Sequence record: NC_028999.1 | Length of the DNA: 64,000 nucleotides | Reading direction: 5' to 3' (one strand) | Shown here: positions 4,545 through 61,201 of the stretch, piece after piece | Layout: every line of letters starts with the position of its first letter | Position numbering within the stretch: the stretch's first letter is position 1 | Made by a program: the position numbers and the translations under genes | Notes under the pieces: model-generated | The model's input: the letters and a program-made list of their open reading frames with translations, nothing else | What the model was told of the DNA's origin: nothing | Database searches by the model: none

Positions 4545-5667
4545 TTGTGGTTCCTCGATATACGCCTGCAATATGCTTGGACAATGCACGGAGCAAAATG
4601 CTCGTGGTTGAAATGAGTTTAGGAGACATTACCATCCGTTCCTCTACAGAAGTATTGCCGAAGATCAGATCAATCGGAGTACCGTCTTCCGTTTCGTTAC
4701 GACCTTCCATTACCCGAGAGATAACAGTTTTCATCTGGTTACCGAGTACACCTTTATCACCGACACCACAAGAGATGTCATGGTCGATATAGATGCGGAT
4801 AACCATGTGGTCTGGTTCAAGGATTTGACCTTTCACACGGAACGACGAATCCACTTCACCGGTAAACACCGGTTGATTCAGAGACTTCGCAATATCTGCA
4901 CGTTGTTTGTCAGAGGCGCGAGCGATCGCTTGCAGGTTCTCGGACATGTCTTCGATGTCACCATGATAGTAACATTCGATCTTCGACACAGTACCGACAA
5001 CTTTAGCACGCGGGGTGTGCGCAGCCAGTCGACGCAGCGTTTCAATAGCCGCATCGCCAAACAGCGTGTTCTCTGCGGTTTCGGGGTCTTCGATTATACA
5101 TAGAATTGAATTCAGGTCGACATGGTCTCCCCGCTTCACCAATTCTGAAACATGTTGATCAAAGCGAACAGTGATGTTCTTAATGTCGGTGGTCTGTGTT
5201 TGTAGGCGCACAGCCAGTTCTTTCGAAATGGTTGAGCCGTCCTCCAATGTATCGAGGTTATCACAGAAAGCCACCGTTGCCATACATCCAGCTTTCCACA
5301 ACACTTGGCCCGGAGCATAACGGTCCGCAGTGAAGTACTTACGGTTGTACGCGATCGTATCACCATGTTTGAACTTGTCACCTTTCTTCAGATCAGTTAC
5401 CAAGTCATGTGGATAGTTCACACCAGCAGCGGTGCCATGAACGATCCCCAGAGGCGAACTCACGATTTCTCCATCAGCGTATTTAACGGTAATGCCATGC
5501 TCGTCAACCGAGATAACTTCACCGTCTTGTTCAGCAGCAGTAGCGAAGATGGAACTGGTACGCTGTGCTACAATTTGCTCGTAGCCGGTACGCACTGGAG
5601 TTACTTCGTAACCATCAGCATAGATACCTTGCTGTTGCTGAATACTGATAAATCCGACGCGTTTCAT
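4528..5667 (-). CDS. Virion RNA polymerase beta-like subunit (gp178-like), exon 2
   Basis: Starts MKRVGFISIQQQQG; spliced to exon 1 it gives NDD|MKRVGF, matching the beta-subunit DDxxR motif. Later motifs: LEDG...IS and GDKGVLGNQMKTVI. Confidence 0.88.
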   Translation of the reverse strand: MKRVGFISIQQQQGIYADGYEVTPVRTGYEQIVAQRTSSIFATAAEQDGEVISVDEHGITVKYADGEIVSSPLGIVHGTAAGVNYPHDLVTDLKKGDKFKHGDTIAYNRKYFTADRYAPGQVLWKAGCMATVAFCDNLDTLEDGSTISKELAVRLQTQTTDIKNITVRFDQHVSELVKRGDHVDLNSILCIIEDPETAENTLFGDAAIETLRRLAAHTPRAKVVGTVSKIECYYHGDIEDMSENLQAIARASDKQRADIAKSLNQPVFTGEVDSSFRVKGQILEPDHMVIRIYIDHDISCGVGDKGVLGNQMKTVISRVMEGRNETEDGTPIDLIFGNTSVEERMVMSPKLISTTSILLRALSKHIAGVYRGTTNAKAK

Positions 5668-7019
5668 CGAGATCTTCAGATAGTTCGTTAGACTATCCCG
5701 TGCGTTTAAGCACTGCTCTAGGCTTTCCCTAGATGTCGAGACTATATCTTCCCCTACGTGAGAGGCTTCCCATTTCGAGCCCACTTGAGCCCTACACCGT
5801 GATAAGCGGTTAGTCGTTGAACCTTACCCATATCTTTCGACTTAGGGTCTTGGCTGCTGATTGTCCAATCTATCTCGTTTTCAAACCGTCAATACCTGCT
5901 TTCGCGGTACTTGTGGTGAGACAGCTCTAAGGACGTTCCAGCAATTAGAGAAGATACCATCTAGATATCGCTATCTAGTGGGACTGTATCTATTAAATCT
6001 TTGTAATAGCCATAGCGATAGCCATCACTATAAACTTTGTTACCTTTGGATTTCAAACGTTCATTTAACGTAGTGGGTTTTAAGAACATTGACGATGCGC
6101 ACATGTGTGGAGATTCGAAGGCAATCCTTCTACCATTTTCACCAATCAACAGCACGGGTTTCTTCCCAGCTAAAGCCATGTCAAGGTAAGGATCATCAAC
6201 TATTCGCCATTCATCGGTATCCCATCGAATCTGACGGAGACCAGGTATGATTGGTTGAGTTGGATCGTTTATCCATTGGCTAACAGTAGGTAATGCAAAC
6301 CCAATAAATCTAGCTGCATCTGTGAGACTGACGAATTCAGTAATTTCACCGGAAATGAGACACTTTATTAAAACTTTCCGATGATTTAGGTTAGCTTGAA
6401 TCTCTTTATCAATGTCAACTGGTATATACCAAGGTTTATCACTAATGCGTCGATACTGTCGTTTCTCGGGAAACACACGCTCCTGCCCGACTTTGACTCG
6501 GTATGAGATAGCGTCTTTCGATAAACCGTAATATCGACCGCAGTCAATGTAACTGGGGAAAGTGCGAACTTCCCCTGTGATAGAATCCCTGACTTCAATT
6601 GGAATACATTTATCAGAAATTCCAATCTCTCCAGCATGCTCAATATTGCGTTGAGCGGTTACCCATTCTAAGTTATCAAGGCGGTCATCGCCTTTTATGC
6701 CGTTTTTGTGATTCACCACCAGTTTAGTTATATCTGAATCAAAGGGAATGTAGACGAATGCTAGTAATCGATGTCGTCCCCATGTAAGAGTAACTCCATG
6801 ATCGTCCGTCAAACGTAGGTTAACGTAACCAGCTGGATTAACACTTCCCTCCATGAGAGAGCAAGTGTGAAAGCTGTATACATCCCCGTCCCTTGAAATA
6901 AGATATTTACTGTAACCAGGAATCGGCGAGAAATCCTTTAAGTTTATAGCCATGTCTATCCTCCAAAAACACTATAACATTGGAGTATAGACTTCACAAA
7001 CATTCAATAAACAATAACA
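5668..7019 (-). mobile_element. Self-splicing group I intron (1352 nt) carrying a homing endonuclease
   Basis: On the - strand: P element AATTGCTGGAA (~5935-5945), Q AATCAGCAGCCAAG (~5850-5863), R GTTCAACGACTA (~5811-5822), S AAGATATAGTC (~5740-5750). The 5' exon ends in U (7020), the intron ends in G (5668), and splicing is in frame (1081+379 aa). Confidence 0.9.
5961..6953 (-). CDS. Intron-encoded NUMOD4-HNH homing endonuclease
   Basis: N-terminal IPGYSKYLISRDGDVYS (NUMOD4-like), HRLLA...VVNHKNGIKGDDRLDNLEWVTAQRNIEHA (HNH), repeated C-terminal HTH-like modules; GGAGGA RBS. Confidence 0.9.
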   Translation of the reverse strand: MAINLKDFSPIPGYSKYLISRDGDVYSFHTCSLMEGSVNPAGYVNLRLTDDHGVTLTWGRHRLLAFVYIPFDSDITKLVVNHKNGIKGDDRLDNLEWVTAQRNIEHAGEIGISDKCIPIEVRDSITGEVRTFPSYIDCGRYYGLSKDAISYRVKVGQERVFPEKRQYRRISDKPWYIPVDIDKEIQANLNHRKVLIKCLISGEITEFVSLTDAARFIGFALPTVSQWINDPTQPIIPGLRQIRWDTDEWRIVDDPYLDMALAGKKPVLLIGENGRRIAFESPHMCASSMFLKPTTLNERLKSKGNKVYSDGYRYGYYKDLIDTVPLDSDI

Positions 7020-22451: not shown

Positions 22452-22481
22452 CCATTGTAAAAAGTTTCAAATCTATATTAC
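22452..22481 (+). promoter_or_regulatory. phiKZ-type early promoter
   Basis: ccattgtaaaaagtttcaaatcTATATTAC (motif at 22474-22481). Confidence 0.75.
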
Positions 22482-26486: not shown

Positions 26487-26506
26487 AGGGAGCCTTCGGG
26501 CTCCCT
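26487..26506 (+). terminator. Intrinsic terminator (gggagcc-ttcg-ggctccc family)
   Basis: The same hairpin recurs at 57386-57401 and 59229-59246. Confidence 0.75.
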
Positions 26507-40515: not shown

Positions 40516-40552
40516 CCATTAAATTTTATTTCAAATCTATATTACGTCTTTG
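40516..40552 (+). promoter_or_regulatory. phiKZ-type early promoter (copy A of an identical 37-bp element)
   Basis: ccattaaattttatttcaaatcTATATTACgtctttg, identical to 59268-59304. Confidence 0.8.
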
Positions 40553-40580
40553 GAGTGCGCGCCAAAGTTAGGAGTTTATA

Positions 40581-41408
40581 ATGTCGTCTGAAGTCCAACC
40601 GAACATTCTCGGTGCACGATATACCCATTGTTTTATTCGTATTACTGGGGACCTGGAAGGAGCACGTTCTTTCTTCTACATTGAGGACGTTGATGGCTTA
40701 GGTTTACGGAAAACTGAAGAGCAACAAGAAGCTAAAGTCTTCCGCAATGATTTCGTGGATACTCTGTGGCTACCTTTGATTAAGAAACACCTGATGGCCA
40801 GCTACGATCGTACTAAAGGTAATCACATCTGGAGTATTCACGTCGTACCTCTGGTAGTTGTTGAAACTGATACTCGCCATTTCCACCTAGAAGTAAACGC
40901 TGATGAATCGGCTGAGTACGTGACTCCAGAAACCGAGATTGATCCGAACAAACTCGTTGTTGCCGAAACGTTCTCTAATGAACATCTCAATGAACTGACG
41001 GTTGAAGGTGAACTCAAACCACTGGATCCAGAATTGCTGTACAGCAATAGCTCGTTCATTGAAAAGAGTATCCGTAGTGTTGCGCAAGTTCCTCCACCTG
41101 ATGCGTTTGAAACCTACGAAGAACATTCAGCTTATGACGTGATCCAAGCATTGCGCCGAGTAGGCGAGTTGTCTAAAGTACAATCAATCACCGGTTCTCA
41201 TCAGCATACCTTCCACATGGAAACCAATGATGAAGGTAGCTTTGTTATTCACAAAGTCAGTATCCCTGGCATTGTATCGCCGACTGAATGGGGCGACCTA
41301 ATCGAGAAAGCAAAAGCATCCGGTTGGTATAACCTGTCTGCCGAGCAGTATGGTAAAGGTTCCGCGACTTACCAGGTTCTAAATCTCTGGCGAAAGCTGG
41401 ACATCTGA
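40581..41408 (+). CDS. Hypothetical early protein
   Basis: 275 aa, aggag RBS, first gene after the early promoter. Confidence 0.7.
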   Translation: MSSEVQPNILGARYTHCFIRITGDLEGARSFFYIEDVDGLGLRKTEEQQEAKVFRNDFVDTLWLPLIKKHLMASYDRTKGNHIWSIHVVPLVVVETDTRHFHLEVNADESAEYVTPETEIDPNKLVVAETFSNEHLNELTVEGELKPLDPELLYSNSSFIEKSIRSVAQVPPPDAFETYEEHSAYDVIQALRRVGELSKVQSITGSHQHTFHMETNDEGSFVIHKVSIPGIVSPTEWGDLIEKAKASGWYNLSAEQYGKGSATYQVLNLWRKLDI

Positions 41409-43573: not shown

Positions 43574-43614
43574 AATAGTGGGAGGCTTCGGCCTCCCACT
43601 TATTCCATCTCAAG

Positions 43615-57378: not shown

Positions 57379-57428
57379 CTTCAGTGGAGCCTTCGGGCTC
57401 CCTTTTATTTCGACAAAAGGAAAATGTA

Positions 57429-58716: not shown

Positions 58717-59088
58717 GTGATGCAATGTTTTACACACGTAACGCGACTTCTGGTTGTAGCGGCCCTTGTGGTACTGCCGTTGCAAGCAAAGTCAGCTGAG
58801 GTGGTTGATACGGATGGGATTTGTCATATGACTGCCCTCCTGGATCAGGCTACTGCCGAAGCACGGGATCGAGGTGATACCGTGAATCAGCAGCAGGGCG
58901 CCCTCCTCGCCCTTCAAAAAGGGTACGGCGTGAAGAACAAAGATAACGTTCTTTACAGCGTCTTACCGAAAGCGATACAAGAAGTCCGTAGTGTCTATCA
59001 GAAGCGACAGCCTCCGAAAGAAGCTTATGTGACTGCTTATAACGCCTGTATGTCAGACCGTTTCAACCGGATGGTTGCAGCGCAGTAG
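58717..59088 (+). CDS. Hypothetical secreted/periplasmic protein
   Basis: Signal-peptide-like RLLVVAALVVLPLQAKSA, two Cys; terminator 59098-59115. Confidence 0.6.
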   Translation: MMQCFTHVTRLLVVAALVVLPLQAKSAEVVDTDGICHMTALLDQATAEARDRGDTVNQQQGALLALQKGYGVKNKDNVLYSVLPKAIQEVRSVYQKRQPPKEAYVTAYNACMSDRFNRMVAAQ

Positions 59089-59267
59089 TATCATACTGCC
59101 TCCCTGCGGGGAGGCTTTATGTCATCTTAGAGAAAAGTTACCCTCCATTGAAATAACATGCACGCGTAGCAAGGAACAAGCTTTCGGCCATTCGTTCGAA
59201 GCTGGGCTGGATGTAAGCGGTATAAAGCGGGAGCCTTCGGGCTCCCTGCTTTTCCTTTTCTTTTTTG

Positions 59268-59304
59268 CCATTAAATTTTATTTCAAATCTATATTACGTC
59301 TTTG
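59268..59304 (+). promoter_or_regulatory. phiKZ-type early promoter (copy B of the identical 37-bp element)
   Basis: Identical to 40516-40552; TATATTAC at 59290-59297. Confidence 0.8.
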
Positions 59305-59335
59305 CTGAACCAACACTCAATCATTAGGGGTAATC

Positions 59336-60124
59336 ATGATCACGCTTAAAAAGTCGCTGACCCAGTGCACGCTGGATAGCTGGTATACCTTCATGGCTGA
59401 GAACAGCCTGTCTCGTTTTGATTGTCTGATTGATATTGGCTATCTGGATGAACCACTGCGTAAGATTCTGGAGAAGCACCCGATGTACCGTGGGGATGGT
59501 ACCATTCTCCTGAACCTGTCTGTGAATGCCTGTAAGCACATTAACTACAGAGGCGATGCATTTACCGGTGAGATCGGTCTTCAGGGTCGTCCGACTTCCC
59601 TGTATATCCCGTACCATGCGTTCGTTTCATTGCAGATTCCGCTGTCGGAAACGGCTACAGTAGAAGCCAGTTTCCCGATCTACGACCGACTGGTATTCGA
59701 TGCTCAGAACCCCACCTTCGTACACCCGTACGCTGAAGCTGGGCAACAATCGCTCCTCACTATTGCTCCTGAAGCTGTAGTGAAGTGGATGCACAATGAA
59801 GGCCACACTGAGTGTAATGTCCACAACGTCGGTGAGTTCATTAAGTACGTATGGCCTAATGGTGTACCGATGGAAGTCCAAGAATATTTGGTCGAAGAAA
59901 CCGCCAATATGCTCCGCGACCATCAAATGGCTGTACTGCAAAAGCAGTCTGCACAAGCTCCGGTTCCTTCGAATGACGATCGTATCCCGTTTGAAGAAGC
60001 TGAAATCAAACCCCTGCTGGAATTCCCTGATCTCTCGGCCAATAAAGTTGTTCTGCAACAGCCGGTGGCGTCGAAGTTCAAAGGCAAGCCAACCCTGACT
60101 CTGATTAAAGGAGGTAAGAAGTGA
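59336..60124 (+). CDS. sspB: SspB-like ClpXP adaptor protein
   Basis: N-terminus WYTFMAEN...GTILLNLSVNAC.HI......F...L.G.P..LYIPYHA resembles the SspB fold; C-terminus KGKPTLTLIK resembles the SspB ClpX-binding tail (E. coli RGGRPALRVVK). Confidence 0.65.
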   Translation: MITLKKSLTQCTLDSWYTFMAENSLSRFDCLIDIGYLDEPLRKILEKHPMYRGDGTILLNLSVNACKHINYRGDAFTGEIGLQGRPTSLYIPYHAFVSLQIPLSETATVEASFPIYDRLVFDAQNPTFVHPYAEAGQQSLLTIAPEAVVKWMHNEGHTECNVHNVGEFIKYVWPNGVPMEVQEYLVEETANMLRDHQMAVLQKQSAQAPVPSNDDRIPFEEAEIKPLLEFPDLSANKVVLQQPVASKFKGKPTLTLIKGGKK

Positions 60125-60390
60125 GTGCTTCTGTCGTTGTAGGTCTTCCGACTGTTCTGCTTAGTACCATTCTCACTGCTGGGGTACAAGGTCCTGCGGG
60201 TAATAGTCAACTGGCCCAGGACTTCGAGTCTAAGGAAGCTTGCTGGCAAGCAATAGGTGCAATTCAACAAGCAACAGGTACCAATGGCGTAAAAGTACAC
60301 CAGATCGAACAAGGTGTTGTCCTTGAATATAGTTTTGAGGGCAAGAACATCCGTCGTGAAATGGTTTGTGTTAGCAAGCACAAACAGTGA
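60121..60390 (+). CDS. Small predicted exported protein
   Basis: Hydrophobic N-terminus, FESKEACWQA...MVCV (two Cys); followed by hairpin ~60396-60416. Confidence 0.55.
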   Translation: MSASVVVGLPTVLLSTILTAGVQGPAGNSQLAQDFESKEACWQAIGAIQQATGTNGVKVHQIEQGVVLEYSFEGKNIRREMVCVSKHKQ

Positions 60391-60448
60391 ATGAGGGGAG
60401 TCCTACGGGACTCCCTTTATATCCCCTTCTCTTTTAGAGGCTTTAACA

Positions 60449-61201
60449 ATGAACCGACACAATTCCGAGGAAGTTCGCCAACTGATCGCCGATACGGCTG
60501 TGCAACTGGATACGCTGATGGAGAGTAATCACCTCAATGGCATCCGTTTCACTTTCGTGGCACCCAGTGAGGAGACCTTCAACGAACTGTCCAAGATCAT
60601 TCATGAAGTTGAAAACCTGGGTCACACCATGCGTGTGCTGCGTGGGTCTCTCCATGACTTCAAAGAAATCATGGACGCTCAAGACTTTATCGTCACCGCT
60701 GGTAACAGTTACGGACACATGACTGGTGGTCTGGATGGTGCTCTGGCTGATATCTATCCTGATCTGATCAAACGCGTTCCATCTACCATTGCTCTTAAGT
60801 GTCATGGCGAGCTCAATGTGGGTGATGGTGTACTGGTGCATCGACATATCCAAGAACCCATCTACGAGAAGATCGTGTACAAGGATCAATACCTGGTTTA
60901 CGTGCCGACCATGCGTACTCCACGTCGGTTGGCAAAAGGTAGTGATGTACCTTATCTGGCTACCCACAAGGCCCTGAGTCTGATTCGCCAAGGCCTGATC
61001 CAACATCCTACCTTCCGTAATGTGTTCATGACCCTCATGGGTACTGGCACTGGTAACATTCCCGTGAAGGTAGCAGTCGAGCAATTCCTGCTGGCTCTTC
61101 GGAAAGCTACTCGGATTGTCAATGTTAAGAAGCTGTTCGATGATGGTAAAGACGTCGACCATGAACTGGTTAACATTTGGAAAAGGTATGGCAATGAGTA
61201 A
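60449..61201 (+). CDS. Macrodomain (ADP-ribose-binding/hydrolase) protein
   Basis: DFIVTAGNSYGHMTGGLDGAL, GELNVGDG, LVYVPTMRTP, TLMGTGTGNIP. Confidence 0.85.
   Translation: MNRHNSEEVRQLIADTAVQLDTLMESNHLNGIRFTFVAPSEETFNELSKIIHEVENLGHTMRVLRGSLHDFKEIMDAQDFIVTAGNSYGHMTGGLDGALADIYPDLIKRVPSTIALKCHGELNVGDGVLVHRHIQEPIYEKIVYKDQYLVYVPTMRTPRRLAKGSDVPYLATHKALSLIRQGLIQHPTFRNVFMTLMGTGTGNIPVKVAVEQFLLALRKATRIVNVKKLFDDGKDVDHELVNIWKRYGNE

Follow-up and report, generated by a model that had tools for sequence, protein, structure and literature searches.

An SspB-like protein of the jumbo phage PhiPA3 with a ClpX-docking-type tail, a candidate adaptor for host ClpXP

We examined gene 270 of Pseudomonas phage PhiPA3, carried on a stretch of 64,000 nucleotides from sequence record NC_028999.1 (the window, to which all positions refer), and consider it an about even chance (probability roughly 0.5) that its product, gp270, is a phage SspB-family protein that serves as a tethering adaptor for the host protease ClpXP. 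PhiPA3 is a phiKZ-like jumbo phage of 309 kb that infects Pseudomonas aeruginosa PAO1. Window positions 59000-60400 are a 100% match to positions 245000-246400 of the PhiPA3 record HQ630627.1, and subtracting 186000 from a position in that record gives the window position. GenBank labels gene 270 'hypothetical protein', with the depositor note 'similar to stringent starvation protein B in Marinomonas sp. MWYL1'; the likeness to SspB has been on record since this 2011 deposit. In the preliminary description, which was made from the DNA letters alone, the element began at 59268. That is the first base of a 38-nucleotide promoter block, and the ATG itself lies at 59336. Translation of the open reading frame (ORF) ends in KFKGKPTLTLIKGGKK, the same C-terminal letters as had been read before. 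The parts of the gene are as follows.

59336-60124, plus strand: coding sequence of gene 270 (gp270, AEH03693.1), ATG start, 262 residues plus stop
59336-59725, plus strand: residues 1-130, SspB-fold domain with an N-terminal helix (8-22), a beta core and a helix at 116-124
59726-59980, plus strand: residues 131-215, variable and partly helical spacer (helices 145-154, 162-172 and 179-206)
59981-60121, plus strand: residues 216-262, disordered C-terminal region with two conserved peptides (predicted local distance difference test, pLDDT, 44-70)
60008-60028, plus strand: residues 225-231, KPLLEFP, a phage-family-specific peptide identified by column counts among relatives
60083-60109, plus strand: residues 250-258, GKPTLTLIK, a putative XB-type motif for docking to the ClpX N-domain, identified by likeness to bacterial SspB tails
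60110-60121, plus strand: residues 259-262, GGKK, an extension past the XB-type motif whose Gly codons GGA GGT also read as a Shine-Dalgarno-like GGAGGT

That gp270 is homologous to SspB is close to certain. A profile of four phage homologues matched solved SspB chains in the PDB at an E-value of 1.5e-8, and a phage-only profile of 27 sequences did so at 5.2e-15. AlphaFold2 (AF2) run without an alignment was not usable (pLDDT 39); the 30-sequence alignment used instead gave a single-chain model with pLDDT 90–97 over residues 11-130, in which the N-terminal helix 8-22 is predicted at high confidence. When this model was searched against the PDB with Foldseek, ranks 1–13 were all SspB (probability 1.00, template modelling (TM) score relative to the target 0.68–0.80), among them the SspB chain in 8et3, a ClpXP delivery complex. 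The alignments span 111–131 columns, which is the N-domain only. The SspB-like N-terminus proposed in the preliminary description is thereby upheld, including by the Foldseek comparison that it had suggested. Searched by itself, gp270 reached the PHROG family 'SspB-like' at an E-value of 0.014 and the H. influenzae SspB in the PDB at 0.017, and its four close relatives all match Pfam SspB weakly (best E-value 2.6e-4). Residues I57, L59, N60 and A65, from the most conserved strand block of SspB, are common to gp270 and bacterial SspBs, and Y71 and F76 are invariant in the N-domain of the phage family (25/25 phage relatives).

For the tail, we compared gp270 with the products of 80 bacterial sspB loci, all from betaproteobacteria, with C-termini counted from the end. 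MAFFT places the ends of three bacterial SspB-like proteins from the profile search, GGKPTLTLVK (twice) and RPHLTLIK, on residues 250-258 of gp270, where eight of nine residues are identical to those of the bacterial SspB P0028. The residue of gp270 is shared by all 80 bacterial tails at positions -5 (Leu) and -1 (Lys), and by most of them at positions -7 (Pro, 66/80), -2 (Ile, 64/80, the rest having Val) and -9 (Gly, 64/80). GGRPALRVVK is the C-terminus of the E. coli SspB chain 8et3_Y, and KKPTLRVVK that of the SspB-like protein from Pseudomonas phage pf16. The pattern of the bacterial SspB tail has a single occurrence in 47,059 residues of six-frame window segments, namely the gp270 tail. 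Searched alone against PDB sequences, the tail gave spurious matches only (PCNA and a thioredoxin-domain protein), the motif being too short for phmmer.

Two further elements of the C-terminal region, which has no predicted secondary structure over residues 207-262 in the AF2 model, are specific to the phage proteins. Directly after the docking-type motif, G259, G260 and K261 are kept in 25, 25 and 24 of the 25 phage relatives. This Gly-Gly-Lys extension is also found in phiKZ gp232, Phabio 349 and 201phi2-1 gp347, and it is absent from all 80 bacterial and three short phage SspBs, which all end at Lys. The tail had been described as intact and ClpX-docking-like; the docking-type motif at 250-258 does match bacterial tails, whereas intact it is not, as the motif is internal and followed by GGKK. 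Further upstream, P226, L227, L228 and F230 are kept in 23, 23, 25 and 22 of the 25 relatives, and this peptide is absent from the bacterial SspBs compared. Distant members have Trp in place of the docking-motif Leu and keep the Gly-Gly: Phabio 349 (positions 865-1581 of locus L091) ends in SWMTVIDGGK, and 201phi2-1 gp347 (positions 5536-6657 of locus L086) ends in WLQVHEGGLK. Since Trp replacements stand beside a kept Gly-Gly, the Gly-Gly element is more conserved than the motif before it.

The last 10 residues of SspB are known to bind the ClpX N-domain, and the free tail peptide inhibits SspB-stimulated degradation by ClpXP as well as that of lambda O and FtsZ (PMC3983244). ClpX binding by the SspB of P. 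aeruginosa resides in R128-K135, and replacement of these residues raises the dissociation constant from 27 nM to 179 nM (PMC13251409). An XB motif with further sequence after it binds ClpX with a dissociation constant of about 70 nM, 'regardless of the position' (PMC12373786), and because motif position does not matter for ClpX binding, the GGKK extension is compatible with docking. Judged by its residues, the gp270 tail is of the ClpX-docking type, and it probably binds ClpX. By means of it the phage would probably exploit or obstruct host ClpXP early in infection.

Between these two conserved ends lies the least conserved part of the protein. Compared with its closest relative (of the PA1C/BRkr type), gp270 has 67/130 identical residues in the N-domain (52%), 17/85 in the spacer (20%) and 22/44 in the tail region (50%); the spacer alone gives no BLASTP alignment to this relative, and residues 131-215 have no match in PDB sequences, Pfam or Foldseek. 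The AF2 model predicts three helices here at pLDDT 63–81. The BFVD model of gp270 and our AF2 model agree with a TM-score of only 0.52, so where the spacer helices lie with respect to the N-domain is not fixed. Other family members carry unrelated segments of different length in this place, with total lengths of 201–373 residues. An 'extra middle domain' of about 100 residues, as previously proposed, does not fit these observations; residues 131-215 look like a fast-evolving, partly helical spacer rather than a conserved domain or a shared substrate-binding domain. Such a spacer could tune reach or specificity lineage by lineage.

The family was delimited by several searches. tblastn with gp270 yielded 11 phage records, comprising PhiPA3, the PA1C/PS119XW/BRkr/HPP-Temi group (about 39%) and RVTF4 (24%). 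A word-indexed protein search with gp270 alone returned only gp270 itself, an exhaustive protein search gave 12 matches among 1.84 billion representatives, and a profile search gave 23; many of these relatives are on contigs of about 300 kb, including those of phages Psa21 and D6. A Foldseek search of viral models extended the list to PA7, Phabio, Noxifer, 201phi2-1 and phages of Erwinia and Aeromonas. A scan of IMG/VR with the family alignment confirmed PhiPA3 alone; 49 further sequences matched the pattern but were not upheld by tblastn against gp270.

Synteny links gene 270 to genes of more distant phages. phiKZ gp232 (302 residues) and 201phi2-1 gp347 (373 residues) occupy the position of gene 270, after the gp229 homologue and before thymidylate synthase, and counterparts in this position are also present in the PA1C group, RVTF4 and Phabio, which makes at least five genera or lineages. 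Both proteins match Pfam SspB weakly (E-value 6e-5 for gp232 and 1.4e-3 for gp347). phiKZ gp232, with the C-terminus PKLTVIKGGKK, is the founding member of phrog_25970, 'unknown function' (self-profile E-value 5e-214). gp270 matches phrog_25970 through its tail only (residues 224-262, E-value 8.4e-4), and the homologues from PA1C, RVTF4 and Psa21 match it via the N-domain (E-values 1e-9 to 2.5e-6). The connection of gene 270 to phiKZ gp232 and phrog_25970 is new. phiKZ gp232 has been found in infected cells and not in virions, and was enriched in the shell fraction, with the tagged form diffuse outside the phage nucleus (PMC10449902). In Erwinia phage RAY, the SspB-like gp039 is cytoplasmic, and its authors suggested a role as a ClpXP adaptor (bioRxiv 10.1101/2023.02.24.529968). 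We found no link between phiKZ gp232 and ClpX in the literature.

Upstream of gene 270 lie three signals.

59229-59246, plus strand: terminator-like hairpin with a 7-bp GC-rich stem, a TTCG loop and a T-rich run on its 3' side, closing the upstream unit (gene 269)
59268-59305, plus strand: phiKZ-type early (virion RNA polymerase) promoter motif with the core TATATTAC at 59290-59297
59326-59330, plus strand: Shine-Dalgarno-like AGGGG, 6–10 nucleotides 5' of the gene 270 ATG

The 18-mer of the hairpin recurs on the plus strand at 57385-57402, 43580-43597 and 26488-26505 with 0–2 mismatches (0 expected), and with these four copies it looks like a reused intrinsic terminator module of PhiPA3. For the promoter, TATATTAC has been given as the early-promoter motif of phiKZ (PMC7058600, Table 2), whose injected virion RNA polymerase initiates at 28 early promoters (PMC13282480). 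By itself the octamer does not reach significance in the 64-kb window (3 found, 1.2 expected, with 11 of 100 shuffles reaching 3). The 38-nucleotide block at 59268-59305 has an identical copy at 40516-40553 and a related copy at 22474-22481, both on the plus strand. The extended motif does reach significance: three PhiPA3 copies and one from phiKZ all agree in 27 of 58 columns. The copy at 40516-40553 sits before an ORF of 275 residues (40581-41408). The phiKZ copy (positions 5025-5082 of locus L085), nearly identical to that of PhiPA3, lies between gp230.1 and gp230.2, upstream of gp230.2-gp231-gp232, which makes gp232 the third gene of a putative early operon. A scan of the gene 270 region for sigma-70 promoters found none, as expected because the phage uses its own polymerases. 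The hairpin, the early motif and the AGGGG together mark gene 270 as the first gene of a new transcription unit; its earlier placement behind an early promoter agrees with this motif, repeated at 40516-40553 and conserved in phiKZ. From the promoter motif we infer early expression of gene 270.

Downstream, gene 270 is coupled to a small gene that is absent from the PhiPA3 GenBank feature table.

60121-60390, plus strand: unannotated ORF of 89 residues that begins with GTG and overlaps gene 270 at its stop by 4 nucleotides, with a hydrophobic N-terminus and two Cys

Its product (phrog_32080) is 50% identical to that of the gene directly downstream in PA1C and 31% identical to phiKZ gp232.2; the phiKZ annotation shows two short ORFs, gp232.1 and gp232.2, in the corresponding region. 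The small gene recurs downstream in PA1C and phiKZ, so the two genes form a conserved pair. Seven phage genomes were examined, and in each the following gene begins inside or at the stop codon of the SspB-like gene, with Gly-Gly codons (GGA GGT, GGT GGT or GGG GGT) 7–9 nucleotides upstream of that start. Because the wobble bases of these codons vary, the amino acids themselves are probably under selection too. The small protein may work with gp270 as a partner or be its client.

SspB-type ClpXP adaptors, phage copies included, are already known, and gp270 can be set beside them. Bacterial SspB (E. coli and H. influenzae; PF04386; 1ou9, 1ox9 and 8et3) has the same N-domain fold, with homology at the profile level, and the same layout of a folded domain, a disordered region and a short ClpX-docking peptide, whose invariant positions the gp270 tail matches. 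However, gp270 is only about 20% identical to it and longer (262 residues, compared with 133–171 for the 80 bacterial loci, 165 in E. coli and 135 in P. aeruginosa (PMC13251409)); its spacer is longer and partly helical, it has the extra 226-230 peptide, and its docking motif is internal. The host's own SspB (PA4427) is the adaptor for MucA-AlgU and for ssrA substrates (PMC13251409). It shares with the proposed role of gp270 the host protease and, in R128-K135, a tail of eight residues from Arg to the terminal Lys; we scored K251-K258 of gp270 as the same in length and end residues, yet the gp270 segment starts with Lys. The AlgU-contact loop of the host protein (R91/E92; PMC13251409) is without a counterpart in gp270.

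Among phage proteins, phiKZ gp232 and 201phi2-1 gp347 share with gp270 the synteny, the SspB-like N-domain, a variable middle and a downstream gene overlapping the stop, but are only 20% and 17% identical to it, with middle regions that are unrelated and longer, and gp232 is the third gene of its unit whereas gene 270 is the first. The short phage SspB-like proteins (phrog_8945; pf16 gp18, Ralstonia FLC1-1B gp93, Erwinia AH06 gp38; and RAY gp039) are annotated host-takeover genes; RAY gp039 comes, like gp270, from a nucleus-forming phage. pf16 gp18, FLC1-1B gp93 and AH06 gp38 have 128–155 residues and carry the docking motif at the very C-terminus with the canonical Lys last; their identity to bacterial SspB goes up to about 52%, with about 51% for pf16 gp18 and FLC1-1B gp93 and 31% for AH06 gp38. 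Unlike gp270, the short proteins lack the long spacer, the 226-230 peptide and the Gly-Gly-Lys extension. What is new is a chimallivirus-type SspB variant in which the spacer is long and variable, a second peptide is conserved, the docking motif is internal and followed by Gly-Gly-Lys, the ligand surface has diverged, and a small gene is coupled downstream. Finally, engineered XB-peptide degraders (CLIPPERs) follow the logic proposed here for gp270, joining an XB peptide, a linker and a binding module; in these a linker-joined XB peptide and a target-binding module suffice to send an untagged target to ClpXP (PMC12373786). They are synthetic, and their binding module is a short bait peptide rather than an SspB-fold domain.

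If gp270 is a tethering adaptor, it would be made in the first minutes of infection and stay in the cytoplasm outside the phage nucleus. It would dimerise like SspB and be leashed via its tail to the N-domains of host ClpX, so that a peptide or protein bound to its own N-domain could be brought to the ClpX pore and degraded. The ssrA tag is probably not what it carries: few of the conserved bacterial N-domain positions are kept, and the family has its own invariant residues instead, which, on a narrow bacterial reference set, argues against ssrA as the ligand. The 226-230 peptide and Gly-Gly-Lys would probably modify docking, through an extra contact or higher avidity, and this is the weakest step. 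The preliminary description suggested either a redirection of ClpXP or a decoy role, and this is plausible. As to the net effect, we lean tentatively towards delivery of cargo rather than blockade, because both ends are conserved while the middle drifts, as in a two-ended tether and as a pure decoy would not need, and because an XB peptide with a binding module is known to be sufficient for ClpXP delivery (PMC12373786).

Several observations weigh against the adaptor reading. As a single sequence, gp270 matches Pfam SspB (PF04386) over residues 51-99 only, with 13.8 bits and an E-value of 0.061, below the gathering threshold of 27 bits. Of 44 columns with a conservation of 90% or more among 72 distinct bacterial SspB N-domains, 10 are kept in its N-domain and 9 in the family (the same residue in at least 70% of members); this reference set consists of betaproteobacteria, and the comparison was one of alignment columns. 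Conserved positions of bacterial SspB form the ssrA groove and the dimer interface (PMC9963277), and a peptide-binding groove in gp270 is assumed. Every bacterial tail (80/80) has Lys as its last residue; gp270 retains this Lys as K258, but only 3 of the 25 relatives do, and the docking-type motif is never C-terminal in the gp270/gp232 family. Conservation of the Gly-Gly codons may partly reflect the ribosome-binding site of the overlapping downstream gene. We also found no expression data for PhiPA3 in the literature, and the early timing is based on the motif.

The main rival is a decoy or blocker, in which the tail, possibly with the 226-230 peptide, would fill the ClpX N-domains and shut out host SspB and N-domain-dependent substrates while delivering nothing, thus protecting phage proteins or disturbing host regulation such as that of MucA/AlgU. 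In its favour, free SspB tail peptide blocks N-domain-dependent degradation by ClpXP (PMC3983244), host SspB delivers MucA-AlgU with the same type of tail (PMC13251409), the extra conserved tail elements (226-230 and Gly-Gly-Lys) could raise affinity, and gp270 lacks most of the residues that make up the ssrA groove and the dimer interface in bacteria. We nevertheless regard it as unlikely: a tail alone would do for this purpose, yet the N-domain is the best conserved part (52%) and has invariants of its own in Y71 and F76, and the protein would be required in amounts stoichiometric with ClpX. Another view, that gp270 does the work of host SspB by binding ssrA-tagged polypeptides and helping ClpXP to clear more of them in infected cells, where ribosomes often stall, is improbable. 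It has in its favour the shared fold with I57, L59, N60 and A65 kept, and the existence of near-canonical phage SspBs (pf16 gp18, FLC1-1B gp93 and AH06 gp38); the low retention of the 44 conserved columns speaks against it, as do the absence from gp270 of the bacterial motif around the AlgU-contact loop and the fact that the host already has an SspB.

Two further explanations place gp270 outside ClpXP or deny it a function. An SspB-fold protein acting elsewhere, for example as a scaffold for the small downstream protein or for a component of the phage nucleus, with its tail kept mainly by overlap with the downstream ribosome-binding site and start, would account for the conserved gene pair, for the next start at the stop codon with G-rich Gly-Gly codons 7–9 nucleotides upstream in 7/7 genomes, and for the enrichment of phiKZ gp232 in the shell (phage nucleus) fraction (PMC10449902). 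We judge it more improbable still, as the overlap accounts for the last 4–5 codons at most and not for residues 250-257, which match bacterial tails; the Gly wobble bases vary (GGA/GGT/GGG), as under amino-acid selection; and tagged phiKZ gp232 is diffuse in the cytoplasm and not on the shell (PMC10449902). That gene 270 is what remains of a bacterial sspB once captured, now decaying and without function, is hardly credible. The few close relatives (12 among 1.84 billion representatives) and the identity of about 20% to bacterial SspB would fit a remnant, whereas the ORF is intact and has a dedicated promoter, synteny extends across at least five phage genera or lineages, and the N-domain and tail are strongly conserved beside a free-running spacer.

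Two neighbouring genes were also inspected. The product of gene 271 (60449-61201, plus strand; phrog_2613) has weak Macro-domain-like matches, both sub-threshold (Pfam Macro_2, E-value 0.022; Macro, 0.052), and is 45% identical to that of a PA1C gene labelled 'putative tail protein', an annotation that looks doubtful. Going by these matches, gene 271, which adjoins the candidate adaptor gene, possibly encodes an ADP-ribose-binding or -removing protein. The example of 201phi2-1 gp349 had suggested gene 272 as a possible second SspB-like gene, but no similarity was found and the idea was rejected.

The DNA of nucleus-forming jumbo phages is shielded, but host machinery can still reach the proteins and mRNAs that these phages have in the cytoplasm. 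How these phages handle host proteolysis is essentially unstudied, and a 2026 review of jumbo-phage biology nowhere mentions ClpX, ClpP or SspB. A conserved, probably cytoplasmic protein, early by its promoter motif and with a host-type ClpX-docking peptide, is a concrete entry point to this question. A broader proposal, which we hold to be doubtful, is that the phiKZ-like nucleus-forming phages have a dedicated early takeover family (PhiPA3 gp270, phiKZ gp232) that seizes ClpX N-domains with an imitation of the host SspB tail, strengthened by the 226-230 peptide and Gly-Gly-Lys. With its diverged SspB-fold domain and rapidly changing spacer the family would either send chosen host proteins (such as cytoplasmic defence or regulatory proteins) to ClpXP or lock ClpXP against phage proteins, with the small coupled protein as a partner or first client. 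If gp270 is merely a diverged copy doing the usual job of SspB, the finding is an ordinary one. If the adaptor reading is true, gp270 would be a natural counterpart of the engineered XB-peptide degraders. The analysis also supplies a functional hypothesis for phiKZ gp232, and it touches the SspB-ClpXP control of MucA/AlgU, which is relevant to P. aeruginosa physiology.

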